A stretch of DNA of 64,000 bases, taken from Macrostomum lignano (lineage: Eukaryota). How positions within the stretch are numbered: the first letter of the stretch is position 1; each line of letters opens with the position of its first letter. The translations under genes and the position numbers were made by a program. Positions 17,156 to 23,635 of this stretch are shown here, in pieces. The notes below the pieces were generated by a model that did not search any database, was not told the DNA's origin, and worked only from the letters and a program-made list of their open reading frames with translations. The stretch lies in assembly GCA_002269645.1 (NCBI GenBank), contig NIVC01001811.1, forward strand, positions 186,001 to 250,000, written 5' to 3'.

Positions 17156-17736
17156 GCAATTGCCTACAGGTTTTTGGTATCCGCCGCGCCCAACCCCACC
17201 CCCAGGCGATTAAGGGGTTGACTACGCCACTGGGGTGTACAGTGCACAGGGAATCACCAACGGAAGTTGAAACTATAGTCTAACCAATCTAATCTCTCCC
17301 CATGAACTGTGCTTGCGCAATGCTAAAAGCACCAGTAATTGACGCGGCAGCGAATTCCTGATTCCATTAACTCTTGGCAGTGCAATAATAAAAAGCAAAG
17401 TCTTCATTTTCTTGCTTCGCACTACTCACTTGAAGCTTTCGTGCTTTGAATAATATTGGTCGTAATTAATCGGTCCATTCAGTCGTATTCATTTTTTTCG
17501 AGACTTGGCGGTCAGAAATCGTTTAACAGGCACATGTCAGTAAATTCCCAAATTTCTAATTGACATCAAGAAGTAGTTTCTTATTTGGAACAGGTTGTAC
17601 TGCAACTCGTGCTGATGGTTATGTTGAATCAGTAGCAGAGCTGCTTACTTACTTACTTACTACTGACGGGGGGCGCAGGCGCCGCGAATAGGCCGCGAGG
17701 CCCCTATCGCAACCCCAAGGTAAAAGAGCACAAGGA

Positions 17737-20700
17737 TTAGCCTTGGGGGTGCGCCCAGTCCCCGCCAGTAGTCGGCAGGTCCGCAGTGGAGGCATCGGCG
17801 ACCCTCATCCGGCCGGAGTCCCGGACGAAGGCGCGGAGGTCTCGGATATTGTCCGCGGTGGTCAGCTCGTCCATCCGCTGGGGGTGGCCGAGGTATTTGT
17901 GCCGCGCCTTGTTGAAGTAAGGGCAGAAGGTGACGTGATGCTCCGCGGTCTCCTCTCCTATGCCACAGAAGGGACAGGTGGGAGGGCAACCGGTTTGCAA
18001 CGATATATGTCTCTGGAAGAATCCGTGGCCGGTTAGGACCATGCACATCTCCCTGAGGTCGGTTCTGTTAAGCGAAATCAGATAATCAGAGACTTTCCTG
18101 TTCAGGTTAGGCATGGCAGAGCGGCTCTGCCTGTACTCGGTGCAGCTGTTCCAGTGGAGCTGGTGCTGCTGATGGAGCCACCTGTTGATATGGCGGGTGA
18201 CTTGCGACCTGGGGGTGGGTAGCCTCATCAGACGGTGGTTGCCGTCTGGGTTGCTGCCCTCCTTGGTGAGAGAGTCCGCGAGCTCGTTGCCCAGGATGTT
18301 GCTGTGACCAGGTGTCCAGATAATTCTAATCCTGTTAAGGACTGAGAGAGATTGCACACTGCGGTGGCATTGAGATACTGTAGCAGCGGAGATATTCTCA
18401 GTGGTTAAGGCCTTAATAGCAGCTTGGCTATCAGTGTAGAAATTAATGTCAAAATTATTAATGTTCGCCTGAAACAGTTGCTGGGCACACTGCTCAATGG
18501 CGCAAATTTCAGCTTGGAAAACTGAGGTGTTCTCACCGAGGTGCAGACTTTCCTGGAGAAGCATCTTACCCTCGTGGAAAATGGCAATACCCGCTCCAGC
18601 GCGGCCGTTGAACAGCGAGCCGTCGGTGAAGCAGTGAATGCCCTGGCTGCGCCGGTTCACACCGACATCCAGCGGAATGTTGTCTCGGCCAGGGATGGCG
18701 GTCTTGAAGCCCCTCCTGATGTTGAGGGCGGGAGATCGACTATCCACATTGCCCAGGTCCATGTGGATGTTGTTAAGGTCGCGGCGGACAAAGTCCATAT
18801 GCGGGATTAATGTTTTCATTGGCATAAAGCCAGAGGGCGCGTTATTTAACGTTTTATCTCTGATAAGCCGGGAGGCAGACTTCATAGCCTCCGCCCTAAT
18901 AAATAGGTGAAGCGGAGGTAGGTTAAGGATAGTGTTCAGCCCCTCGTAAGGGGTGGACGGGTACGCACCTGTGATGGCACGGCAAATGCTGCCCTGAAGC
19001 TGGTACAGCCGCTGACGGGCGGCCTTCTGCTCCAGCACGCTAGTCCAGATGAGACTCGCGTATGTGATACTGGGCCGGATGATGCCGGTATAAATCCAAC
19101 GGACCGTTCTAGGCGAGAGGCCCCAAGTCGGCCCGATGGCTCTGCGCAGCTGGGCAAAGCAGCGTTTTGCCCGACCGATGACGTTATCAAGGTGCTTCGT
19201 CCAGCGCAGGTCATGCGTTAGCGTCACACCGAGGTATTTGACCTCCTTCTTGAAGGGGATGTTTCTGCCATAGACAGTGAGGTTTTTCATCTCCCACTTA
19301 CGGCGCTTGGTGAAAACGACAGCGACAGTCTTAGTGACGCTGATTTTTAGGCCATGCTGTGTAGCCCAGTCGGCCGCCTTGTCGGCGAATTGCTGCATCA
19401 GGTTGCGCAGAGTGGCGGGGTCGGGTCCGCTGACGACCGCGGCAACGTCATCGGCGTAGCCCGCCCTGGTGATACTGCTGGGAATGTCAGCGGTTAGAAG
19501 TTCGTCCATGACGAGATTCCAGAGAAGTGGAGTTAGCACGCCACCTTGCGGGCCGCCTTTCATCACCGCCCGGGTGAGGGTAACGCCCATAAGTGTGGAT
19601 GTCACAAACCTTTTGCGGATCATAAAATAAATCCAGCGAACAATGCTGTGTCTTACATTCCTGCGGGAAAGAGAATTTCTGAAGGAGCGGAAGAGGACAT
19701 TGTCAAATGCTCCTTCGAAGTCAACGAACAACCCGCAAGCGAGTTGTTTGCTAAGGATGGCACTCTCAATTTTGGAGGTAATGGCGTGGAGAGCATGCTC
19801 AGTCGTCCTCCCAGGCTGGAAGGCGTACTGGTACTTACTGACAGGGTCGGAGCGCAGGTCGCACTCTCGAAGCCTCCACAGGATGAGCCTCTCCATCAGC
19901 TTAACACAAAAGGAAGTGAGGCTGATGGGCCGGAAGGATTTCACGTTGGTGTAGTCACCCTTAGCAGGTTTCGGGATGAACACGACTCTGGACATTCTCC
20001 AGATTGTGGGAATGTAACCTGTGGTATAACAGTCAACAAGCAATTTAGAGAAAGAATCAGCAAAGTTTTGCAGCTTTAGCGCCTCCTGCAGGATACAGGG
20101 GGCGATATTGTCAGGGCCAGACGATTTATACGGTTTAAAAGAATTTGCTGCCAGCTGGAGTAGCTGGGGGGTGGCGCACTGCTGGAAAAGCTTGTGATCA
20201 CAAGGCCTGTGGTCATCGACCACGTACTCCGGTTCGTCAACCTGCGGAAAGCAGGTGGAGAAAAGAAGATTTAGCGAACCTTCGGCACTGGTAGTGTAGT
20301 TACCATCCAGGTGCAGAAGGGAGTTACACTGAGCTAGCGTGTCGTGCCTGAGAGTCCTGACCAGCCGGGCTGTGGGGTGTTGCCCTTCCAGGCCGGCGCA
20401 GTAGGCTTTCCAGGTGGTCTTCTTAGCCCTTCGGATAGCACTTTTGTACATCCTCAGAGCAGAGTGGTAGTTCTCCCAATCCTCTGGGGTATTCGAGCCG
20501 TTTGCGAGGCGTTGCAGTCGGCGGGTGTTTTTCTTCATGCGAGTGAGCTCTTGACTCCACCAAGGAGAGTATTTCTTCCTGCAAAACAGCTTAGGGGCGT
20601 TAGCGCGTATGGCGGTGTTTAGGATCTCAACGAGGGAGTTGCACCGATGCTCAATGCCAGGGAGATCCTCGCTGGAGTCCGGTAAGTTGGCTTCGGTCAG

Positions 20701-21555: not shown

Positions 21556-22394
21556 TACTCGTTCCCAGAGCTATCCGAGCTCACGGACTCACCTCGGCGC
21601 CGATCGCCGGCTGGACGACGCCTGAGCAGCAGGTGGAAGACGATCTTCCACGCTCCGATGTAGGCGGCAAAATCGTCCTTCTTGAGGGCGTCTTCCCACT
21701 CCGCGGAGAAACCCATGTACAGGGTCTTGCCGGGAGCGCCTTTTGCCGGAACCTCCTTGAAGGCCCGGATACCGTCCTGAGGTAGGTCGGGGTTTTTACT
21801 GAGGAGCCGGGCGCGGATCTCCTCGATGCTTCTCGAGCCGGAGTAGAAGGCTCGGTAGCGCCTGCAGGGCGGCGGTGGTCGGGCACGCTCAACGACCAAA
21901 GGCGGGAGGGCGGTCGTGCAGGTGTCCCAGGAGATGGACACCAGGTTAGCCAGCGCGAGCTCGAGCTGGGCTTCGTCCTTGAAGGCGAGGATGACGCTGC
22001 CGTTGGCGTTTCGAATCGCCTCGACTTTGATGTCGAGGGCGTCGTTTTCCCAGAGGAAGTCATCAATCATGCCGATTGATGCTTCCATCTGGGCGGTGGT
22101 CAGCGTACCGCTAGCCGCGCGCACGCAGATTTTAAATTTCGGCTCCGTCGCCACTTTGGCGTACGTGCCAGCATTGGCCTCCTTTGGCCTCTTGGGGTCC
22201 AGCGAGGGGTCGGTACGCTCGTCTGGCTGCTGCCTTTTCCGCTCAGAGCCAGCCGAGGTTTTATCATCGCGCCTGCGACGGTTGACGACCTGGAAGCCGT
22301 CATTTTGAGACGCCCCTGTAGCGGGGGTAGAGGTGGACGCACCTGAGCGAGGTGTGGGGGTTTCCGCGGGATTCGCGGCAGAATCAACCTCCAT
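21555..22394 (-). CDS. LINE ORF1 (279 aa)
   Basis: Directly upstream of ORF2 with a TAATG stop/start overlap; low-complexity N-terminus, TYAKVA motif, no clear zinc knuckle. Confidence 0.8.
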
Positions 22395-23635
22395 GTTGGA
22401 GGGTTGGGGGATTGACGGACCCCCGGCCGCGGGAATTGACGGCTCCCGAGCCGTAGCAGAGCTGCTGCAGCATCTCGTATTCGGTCTGATTGAGCATCTT
22501 AGTGCTCAGGGCGAAGCAACTCATTGAGCCGTTGAGACAACGGTCGCTTGTGAGATAATATCCCAGTCGGAGGCATTGAAAGGCGGCGATGGAAGAACTA
22601 TAAGTGTTGTAAGCCGTCCGATAAATCGCCTCCAAAGTGCCGTTCCTATACACGTCCCTAAACTCGAGTCCGTCGTTGGTGAATCCAGCCGACAGGAGAT
22701 GCACAGAGCCGTCGGTAGGGAGGAAGTTTGGTGATAGTCCGTACAGAACCTCGCCGGTGTTGGTAGACAGCCAATTAAAGACGTAGAAATAGGCATGATA
22801 CTGGGAAATTGAATTGCTGGCAAAAATTCCAGAGCACTCTTGGAATCTGCTGTAGTACTGCCACCTATATGCACAGAGGTAGGTGATACAAGAGACGTGA
22901 TGCATGTAAGTTACAAGCAATTTAATGTTAAAAGCAGAGTGAATTCTTTCTCACCCGCCGGACATGGCGTGCCGAACCTGCGTAAAAGTCGAGTAGGTGA
23001 AACCGACTCCAAGAAACTTCTCAAAACCGGGGGTCTCAGTGCTCAAGTAGGAGCCCGTGTTGCCCTTGAAGTGAGCACCAGCTGCATCAATTGTCACGTC
23101 GTGAGCCTTGAGACAGGACAGTCTCGGGTTGACCTCATTCTTCAGACCGCTCCGAGAGAACTTGTAGAACAGCTTCAGCTTGAGCTGTTTCACCAAGGGC
23201 TCAGAAGACTCTGCAGTGATAAATTCATAATCTATTTAAACAAGGCAAATGACTTCATTGGAGTGATACAGAATTGTCAAGACAGCAGCCGCTGAGCCGC
23301 TCACCGCAGTCTCCGCACAGCACATCGGTGTACTTGTAAGAGTCGCAGTCGCCGTCAGTCCATTGCTCGAGTTGGGAACACGCGTCTCCATGGTAACACA
23401 GGCGGGTGGCGATGTCGAAGTGGAATGCGTTGCAGGTGGGCAGTCGGGAGCAGGCGGCGGCGCACTGCAGCTTGCTGGCCAGGCGGTGCAGCAGCGGAGA
23501 GGCGGCTGCGGTGGGGCAGCGTCGGGTCTTGACCGCGGCGAACTTCGGCTGCACTTTGGCGCTTGAAGTCACCGCCAGGCAGCTGAGTAGTAGGAGGCAG
23601 GTGAAGTGTAGTTGAATAGCGTTCCAGTTCTTCAT
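22384..23635 (-). CDS. PAN/Apple-LamG family copy C, C-terminus extended by the LINE (355 aa)
   Basis: Exons 23635-23305, 23210-22955 and 22864-22384. The native end LQQLCY continues into LINE sequence [22 protein letters not shown]. Confidence 0.82.

Follow-up and report, generated by a model that had tools for sequence, protein, structure and literature searches.

We propose that an I-like LINE inserted very recently, by target-primed reverse transcription and in sense orientation, at the end of the coding sequence of copy C, a paralog in a lineage-specific family of secreted PAN/Apple-domain genes of the flatworm Macrostomum lignano, and we hold this explanation to be very probable. The insertion at copy C is a real yet ordinary transposon event. 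It was found in a window of 64,000 nucleotides (contig NIVC01001811.1, positions 186,001 to 250,000), and all coordinates below are those of this whole stretch. Gene and LINE both lie on its minus strand, as do all features listed below unless another strand is given.

Insertion site and host gene

The element (17645-22452) is flanked by two exact copies of the minus-strand sequence GCAGCTCTGCTAC, at 17632-17644 and 22453-22465, where 0.09 matches with at most one mismatch were expected by chance. In an independent repeat search the two copies came out as a perfect direct repeat of 14 nt (17632-17645 and 22453-22466); the 14th base is ambiguous and could belong to the LINE tail, so the target-site duplication (TSD) measures 13 bp, possibly 14 bp. 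The upstream copy (22453-22465) encodes the (Q)LCY end of host copy C, and the LINE follows directly after the last codon of the gene, TAC. After the downstream copy (17632-17644) come the host TGA, regenerated at 17629-17631, and the original 3' flank, so that GCAGCTCTGCTAC-TGA stands again at 17629-17644. In this way 4.8 kb now lie between the host ORF and its own stop and 3' flank. When the two flanks were rejoined, the rebuilt empty site matched paralog B through the junction over 20 nt (CAGCAGCTCTGCTACTGATT).

The first-pass annotation had described a 13-bp TSD on the minus strand, a QLCY-TGA end and 3' flank that reappear downstream of a 4.8-kb LINE, a shared orientation of gene and element, and a LINE 5' end that is read as a 22-aa tail with its stop inside ORF1; each of these points was borne out, and the perfect repeat marks a true retrotransposon insertion. 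The statement that the LINE lies "exactly" at the stop codon needs qualification. The junction between TAC and TGA is real, but it is nothing special, being merely the second-strand break, and an AC microhomology of 2-3 nt may blur it.

We propose the following course of events. The endonuclease would have nicked the window's plus strand at GAGCTGC^(T)GCAGC; because the duplication is 13 bp, this first-strand nick would lie 13 bp upstream, within the Q-Q codons of the coding sequence. The (GUAA)n end of the RNA would have primed reverse transcription, and the opposite strand would have been cut between TAC and TGA, 13 bp beyond the nick, so that GCAGCTCTGCTAC was duplicated. cDNA synthesis or joining would have halted about 51 nt before the RNA 5' end, possibly at the AC microhomology. 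The position at the stop codon would then be a coincidence of the staggered cut, with no targeting rule behind it.

The gene model of copy C is intact and has three exons with GT-AG introns. Exon 1 (23305-23635) contains the ATG, the signal peptide and the PAN/Apple domain and is followed by exon 2 (22955-23210) and by exon 3 (22453-22864), which encodes the variable C-terminal half and ends with the last native codon, TAC. From there the host ORF runs into the LINE for 22 codons and a TGA (22384-22452, with the stop at 22384-22386) and overlaps the start of ORF1, the host-frame stop lying 8 nt past the ORF1 ATG (22392-22394). The product would have 355 aa with the tail versus 333 aa in its native form. 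The predicted 22-aa tail is cysteine-free and begins one residue after an invariant Cys; AlphaFold2 models of six members of the host family had a pLDDT of 32, too low for judging the exposure of the C terminus.

Copy C may already have been silent or dispensable, in which case the insertion would have had no functional consequence and the structural explanation given above would still fit. We consider this possible but rather doubtful. Exon 1 of paralogs A and F is apparently frameshifted, the family is large and fast-evolving, and a protein search with copy C matched just two further members of the family and turned up no UniProt model for copy C. On the other hand, the 333-codon ORF of copy C is uninterrupted, its introns are canonical GT-AG introns, and it encodes a signal peptide and every framework cysteine.

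Anatomy and classification of the LINE

The LINE, as bounded by the TSD (17645-22452), is a non-LTR retrotransposon of 4,808 bp with 56% GC and is slightly truncated at its 5' end. No second copy was found within the window by self-BLAST, and a repeat search for LTRs and terminal inverted repeats gave no long terminal direct or inverted repeats. A residual 5' leader of 58 nt (22395-22452) supplies the greater part of the 22-aa tail when read in the host frame; in the ORF1 frame it is open and encodes 19 aa. ORF1 (21555-22394, 279 aa) starts at an internal Met of the family ORF1 and is joined to ORF2 (17737-21555, 1272 aa) by a UAAUG stop-start overlap (21553-21557). ORF2 encodes an AP-endonuclease domain (about 20791-21447; Pfam Exo_endo_phos_2, 5e-22), a reverse transcriptase (RT; 19219-19977; Pfam RVT_1, 2.5e-30) with YADD at 19447-19458 (aa 700), an RNase H (18253-18639, aa 973-1101; Pfam RNase_H, 2.4e-12) and a C-terminal CCHC motif, CX2CX8HX4C (17923-17976, aa 1194-1211), and its C terminus, ...GGDWAHPQG, is the same in 17 other models. 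The 3' UTR (17645-17736) ends in GTA(GTAA)4 (tail, 17645-17663), and the 3' end ...CCGTCAGTAGTAAGTAAG can also be read from two translated models (P0024 and P0025). The fold of the 3' UTR was no better than that of shuffled sequences (z = -0.84). When 17400-22900 was compared with Rfam (E <= 1) to look for a self-cleaving ribozyme or another known RNA in the 5' end of the LINE, the one match was to a snoRNA, below threshold and on the opposite strand.

We then analyzed the ORF1 protein. It carries 27 extra nt (22314-22340, ASTSTPATG) that are missing from 16 other copies, and it contains three cysteines and no zinc knuckles. Searches against Pfam and PDB gave nothing significant; its C-terminal half is weakly DUF4780-like, with a weak hhalign match (63% probability) to the DUF4780 ORF1 of relatives, and its predicted structure (pLDDT 44.6) gives a mere hint of beta-alpha-beta-beta-alpha-beta elements. 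Neither the NPGP nor the D(V/I)ExNPGP motif of a 2A "skipping" peptide is visible at its N terminus.

The AP-endonuclease, a YxDD RT, a simple-repeat tail, a TSD and multiple dispersed copies together place the element among the APE-type LINEs. We class it as I-like on the grounds of its ORF1, its UAAUG overlap, the endonuclease, RT, RNase H and CCHC encoded by ORF2, and its (GTAA)4 tail. The I factor and other I-clade LINEs have two ORFs, an ORF2 with AP-endonuclease, RT, RNase H and CCHC, and a short simple-repeat tail. The window element shares the two ORFs and this ORF2, with RNase H downstream of the RT and the CCHC at the C terminus, as well as a short simple-repeat tail rather than poly(A), a TSD of 13-14 bp and many insertion sites. 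It differs from them in its tail, a simple repeat with the unit GTAA instead of (TAA)n, and in its ORF1, which lacks the CCHC knuckles of the Gag-like I-clade proteins and is at best of a divergent DUF4780 type. Among relatives with 32-35% identity in ORF2, the tail is (TAA)8 in L001 and (CAA)7 in L004, and L003 has the same stop-start overlap, TAATG.

The R1-clade elements SART1, TRAS1 and R1Bm of Bombyx mori are strictly site-specific and reside in telomeric repeats or 28S rDNA. The endonuclease domain of the window LINE is similar to those of TRAS1, its best match among solved structures (E = 3.7e-17), and R1Bm (3.7e-9); its RT matches the L1 and R2 RTs in the PDB. Unlike the three R1-clade elements, the window family has an RNase H domain and adjoins many unrelated host sequences instead of a single specific repeated target. 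The UAAUG overlap between ORF1 and ORF2 is found also in SART1, where it mediates translational coupling according to a passage in PMC3894237 that cites Kojima et al. 2005.

The LINE family and the truncated copy in the window

In M. lignano, at least 38 gene models, taken from UniRef only, contain segments 92-100% identical to ORF1 or ORF2 beside differing host sequences, which indicates a young and abundant family. We examined the 5' end of the family in these translated models, some of them spliced predictions, which are also the basis of our statements on microhomology and on the lack of target preference. All 16 models that reach REPSIPAAG go on upstream with (FFHFSLLC)MDKSKPPDTA; this continuation (FFHFSLLCMDKSKPPDT) lengthens the ORF1 frame by at least 17 further codons, one of them an ATG (MDKSK). 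The window copy begins with ...(T)AREPS (DNA start, GGCTCGGGAGCC), and host sequence takes over exactly where the homology breaks. Since all 16 other copies continue upstream, the window LINE appears 5'-truncated by at least 51 nt, and its ORF1 lacks the upstream in-frame ATG and 9 codons of the family ORF1. In 6 of the 16 models unrelated sequence stands ahead of FFHF, which places the 5' end of the family at FFHF or further upstream. A retroposed spliced leader was considered as the source of this end (...SLLCM) and rejected: when the published 35-nt SL (PMC8629364) is translated in the frame set by its terminal ATG, the result is ...YCEDSIYCM, in which just CM and one S agree.

Judged from these comparisons, the window LINE is not a complete copy, and the 5' terminus of the family is gone from it. 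It has the uninterrupted ORF2 and the shared C terminus of a full-length copy but not the complete 5' end or the first ATG of ORF1. The "intact ORFs" of the first-pass annotation are thus uninterrupted, as stated, but the putative upstream start of ORF1 is missing with the truncated 5' end. We regard it as improbable that the window LINE represents an autonomous master element, complete and equipped with an internal promoter. Both ORFs are open, all catalytic motifs of ORF2 are present, and ORF2 is about 99% identical to that of other copies, as such an element would have them, but the additional upstream codons in 16 of 16 copies, the family 5' end indicated by the six models and the coincidence of the homology break with the exact start of host sequence all argue for a truncated insertion.

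In mammals, 5'-truncated L1 insertions in sense orientation can replace the 3' end of a gene and supply a new stop codon or poly(A) site. The insertion in copy C resembles them in its proposed target-primed reverse transcription, staggered cut, TSD and possible junction microhomology. It differs in that the element belongs to another LINE clade, has a simple-repeat tail instead of poly(A) and lost just about 51 nt; because the truncation is this short, both ORFs survive.

Our preferred explanation, an insertion without a targeting rule, also has to be weighed against targeted insertion, in which the endonuclease would recognise the conserved 13-mer, the gene end or the stop-codon contexts of the host family. 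The endonuclease is, by sequence and among solved structures, most like the site-specific TRAS1 and R1Bm enzymes, and the 13-mer or near-copies of it recur at the ends of paralogs. However, paralogy accounts for this recurrence, and of the seven paralogs just one has its site occupied. In the translated models, other LINE copies are preceded by at least nine unrelated host sequences. With the first nick 13 bp upstream of it, the stop codon cannot be the sequence that is recognised. We therefore consider targeting very unlikely. Paralog B does contain the same 13-mer followed by TGA (GCAGCTCTGCTAC-TGA), unoccupied, at 14720-14735 on the plus strand, as first noted; it shares 55% aa identity with copy C in exon 3, and its sequence makes it a paralogous site and not an empty allele.

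An assembly join or inter-paralog recombination without any transposition, in a repeat-rich polyploid genome whose assemblies are highly repetitive and redundant (PMC5730564), could draw on the 13-mer common to paralogs B and C, but is extremely improbable, as the perfect repeat borders the LINE tail and 5' end with single-base precision, the flanks share only 13-14 bp of homology, and once rejoined they stay collinear with paralog B past the stop.

Possible expression through the host, and significance

The window LINE probably lacks a promoter. It would then depend on the host gene for any transcription, which the loss of its own 5' end makes more plausible. For the host mRNA there would be two outcomes: it would end within the LINE, whose sense strand contains a single AATAAA (at 21463, about 1 kb in), or carry the LINE as a long 3' UTR. 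Promoter-less LINEs that are co-transcribed with a host unit include R2, with rRNA, and the 2A-bearing LINEs (PMC3708506, PMC3894237). The window copy would resemble these if it is expressed solely through host-gene read-through; unlike in them, no self-cleaving ribozyme was found at its 5' end (Rfam) and no 2A motif is visible.

There is a slight chance that the family as a whole is built for expression from host transcripts. The ORF1 frame of full-length copies stays open up to the 5' end, and three unrelated gene models (P0006/P0034, P0009 and P0026) splice into one point just ahead of LLCMDKSK. This common splice point suggests a 5' terminus at TTYTTYCAYTTYAG, immediately before Y, with a polypyrimidine tract and AG, and its sequence could fit the trans-splice acceptor motif of M. 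lignano, [T/C]TNCAG (PMC8629364). Polycistronic transcription units make up about 7% in this species (PMC5730564). If the acceptor were used, in cis or by SL trans-splicing of read-through pre-mRNAs, sense insertions at gene 3' ends, like that in copy C, would be the productive ones. The window copy, being without the acceptor, would then be translatable only by re-initiation after the host stop; its ORF1 AUG lies 8 nt ahead of the host-frame UGA.

The papers we found on M. lignano repeats cover LTR elements or bulk repeat figures, and its non-LTR elements are hardly described; the insertion in copy C provides one clean case with TSD, nick site and 5' junction. LINE biology as known is unchanged by it, and its value is local. 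It explains many M. lignano "proteins" in UniProt as host-LINE chimeras, and it could be used as a marker of strain polymorphism and possibly as a handle on LINE expression via host read-through. Copy C is a natural example of a gene that gained a transposon-encoded C-terminal tail and lost its 3' UTR, and the LINE family responsible is active now, or was very recently, in this laboratory flatworm.

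Junctions of the LINE insertion in copy C

The insertion of the 4,808-bp LINE (17645-22452, minus strand) in copy C, a host gene of a PAN/Apple-domain secreted-protein family, is real, clean, and very recent, and is of a known general kind. The element is bounded by a 13-bp target-site duplication, GCAGCTCTGCTAC. In a window-wide pattern search, this 13-mer had exactly two exact sites on the minus strand (17632-17644 and 22453-22465), for a chance expectation of ∼0.09 matches at one mismatch or fewer, and an independent repeat search recovered both sites as a perfect direct repeat of 14 nt. 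The plus strand holds four further matches, exact or with one mismatch, two of which are the homologous ends of paralogs B and G. Repeat search of the element found neither long terminal repeats (LTRs) nor terminal inverted repeats.

On the minus strand, the host frame reads CAG CAG CTC TGC TAC and then continues into the element as GGC TCG ... GGA GGT TGA, which gives LQQLCY followed by a 22-aa tail and a stop (22384-22386), located 8 nt past the ORF1 ATG at 22392-22394. Downstream of the element, the host sequence picks up again as GCAGCTCTGCTAC TGA TTC..., and copy B ends in GCAGCTCTGCTAC TGA at 14720-14735. Joining the flanks of copy C in silico yielded ...CAGCAGCTCTGCTACTGATT..., in which 20 nt across the stop are identical to paralog B. 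This match identifies the downstream flank as the original continuation of copy C and, at the level of sequence, argues against an assembly or recombination artefact. The first-pass annotation had thus described the locus correctly in all its sequence statements, namely, the duplication pair, both ORFs, the tail and its stop, the regenerated TGA, and the end of copy B.

The duplication points to a staggered break. The first nick would lie where the tail meets the host sequence, GAGCTGC^(T)GCAGC on the window plus strand, within the Q-Q codons and a short palindrome, and would prime reverse transcription of the RNA from its (GUAA)n end; the second break would fall 13 bp off, between TAC and TGA. 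The exact placement before the stop codon needs no special explanation, as it is simply where the second-strand break fell. We found no evidence for target specificity of the element: among the seven paralogous sites, a single one carries an insertion, and elsewhere the copies lie next to unrelated sequences.

The host gene, its paralogs, and predicted transcripts

The gene model of copy C comprises three exons on the minus strand (23635-23305, 23210-22955, and 22864-22453) separated by GT-AG introns, and its native product of 333 aa grows to 355 aa with the tail. In the protein, a signal peptide is followed by a PAN/Apple domain and by a C-terminal half that weakly matches Laminin_G_3; the structure model was of poor quality. 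The protein database contained only two homologues, both of them M. lignano proteins, and the host family seems restricted to this species.

At least seven paralogs form a tandem or head-to-head array in the window, and four gene models were built besides that of copy C. The array members are paralog A (11468-12547, minus), paralog B (13553-14735, plus), copy C (22453-23635, minus), paralog F (34196-35287, plus), and the plus-strand paralogs at 24789-25948, 28009-29242, and 38995-40162, with family fragments at 31226-31553 and 37407-37734. A block of ∼600 bp, which spans exon 1 and intron 1 and reaches 170 nt into exon 2, has 76 to 99% DNA identity among copies, intron 1 and early exon 2 being 87 to 99% identical, and the promoter region, intron 2, exon 3, and 3' flank are only 26 to 67% identical. 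At the protein level, the PAN/Apple half is near-invariant and the C-terminal half is hypervariable with conserved cysteines. Such a pattern suggests either localised gene conversion or the joining of a constant cassette to diversified ends. In exon 1 of paralogs A (12270-12547, minus) and F (34196-34418, plus), overlapping tblastn segments point to frameshifts. Neither paralog yielded an intact three-exon model, so both may be pseudogenes.

Among copies whose sequence extends to the C-terminus, the penultimate Cys never varies, and one to three variable residues follow it in paralogs; it is therefore not evident that extra residues at this end would damage the protein. Transcription from the copy C promoter would give an mRNA for the tailed protein, and this mRNA would have to terminate inside the LINE or else read through its full 4.8 kb into the former 3' flank. 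The LINE has a single sense-strand AATAAA (21463, ∼1 kb in), and neither AATAAA nor ATTAAA occurs in the 632 nt past the regenerated stop. M. lignano has many polycistronic pre-mRNAs that are processed by spliced-leader trans-splicing (PMC5730564, PMC8629364), whereas the 58-nt leader of the window copy, as read from its sequence, holds no acceptor-like site. Some 500 bp 3' of the regenerated stop lies a 21-bp tandem repeat (17.9 copies, 16783-17155), which creates long spurious ORFs on both strands; the window contains more than 20 satellite or microsatellite arrays, e.g., (TCAC)n at 4359-4810, (AGTG)n at 49413-50403, and a 36-mer array at 52133-53369.

Classification of the element and its relatives

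Two minus-strand ORFs lie between the repeats. ORF2 (17737-21555, 1272 aa) contains AP-endonuclease, reverse transcriptase (RT), and RNase H domains (Pfam) with their catalytic motifs (QINLHH, IQEP, and SDH; YADD; DGS...TDS), and a CX2CX8HX4C motif at its C-terminus. Among solved structures, its endonuclease is closest to those of TRAS1 (3.7e-17) and R1Bm (3.7e-9), and its RT matches L1 ORF2p and R2. ORF1 (21555-22394, 279 aa) had no match in Pfam and PDB searches and lacks zinc knuckles. The ORFs overlap by UAAUG, as in SART1, where such an overlap mediates translational coupling (PMC3894237). The 3' UTR has 92 nt and ends in GTA(GTAA)4.

The nearest elements beyond M. lignano were L001 to L004, with 32 to 35% ORF2 identity, from metagenome and read-archive assemblies (ENA and Logan), in which these full-length relatives stand as eukaryotic contigs of 5 to 6 kb. 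They share the ORF2 architecture of the window element and end in (TAA)8 or (CAA)7; in one of them, the ORFs overlap by TAATG. DUF4780 is present in their ORF1, and the C-terminal half of the window ORF1 aligned weakly with this region (hhalign 63%, E = 7e-5); as judged from these alignments, this links DUF4780, an uncharacterised Pfam domain, to ORF1 of this LINE group. Based on the ORF2 architecture, the ORF overlap, the tail, and the relatives, the element classifies as an APE-type LINE that ends in a simple repeat and belongs to the I-like group with RNase H.

The ORF2 search retrieved dozens of M. lignano UniRef proteins with 92 to 100% identical segments; in one of them (P0001), long stretches match the window copy at all but one residue. 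These matches identify the window as M. lignano DNA and the LINE family as abundant and young. The window contains no further copy of the element, whole or fragmentary.

The 5' end of the family and host-LINE chimeras

The LINE had been described as having intact ORFs, and ORF1 and ORF2 are both open, but its 5' end is slightly truncated: all 16 other M. lignano models that reach REPSIPAAG extend upstream as MDKSKPPDTA. In the family, at least 17 further codons (51 nt) therefore lie upstream of the point where the window copy begins; the window copy, whose ORF1 frame is open from the first base of the element, lacks the in-frame ATG (MDKSK) of this upstream part. Since the duplication directly abuts the truncated end, the truncation dates to the insertion event. 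The promoter of this copy was most likely lost. In the window, ACG encodes the T of ...PPDT-AREPS, and the host TAC also ends in AC, so that, judging from the protein data, a 2- to 3-nt microhomology at the 5' junction is possible. ORF1 of the window copy also carries 27 extra nt (22314-22340, minus strand; ASTSTPATG) between short direct GGNGCGTC repeats, absent from 16/16 other copies, which either mark a subfamily or reflect a private difference by duplication or deletion.

In full-length copies (models P0006/P0034, P0009, P0026, P0014, P0019, P0021-P0023, and P0027), no stop interrupts the ORF1 frame up to the 5' end (FFHFSLLCMDKSK...). Six of the 16 models show FFHFSLLCMDKSKPPDTA, preceded by six unrelated sequences, and the candidate true 5' terminus of the family may start with TTYTTYCAYTTYAG. 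Four models, from three loci, are spliced in immediately before LLCMDKSK, so that three unrelated gene models share one splice-in point, which implies, as read from translated models, that the full-length 5' terminus is a polypyrimidine-AG resembling a 3' splice site. Many M. lignano "proteins" matching ORF2 are gene predictions that fuse host domains with pieces of the LINE, and the host parts of such chimeras in UniProt include GPCR, C-type lectin, kinase, thioredoxin, and others. A splice-site-like 5' end of the LINE would explain why many UniProt M. lignano "proteins" are host-LINE chimeras.
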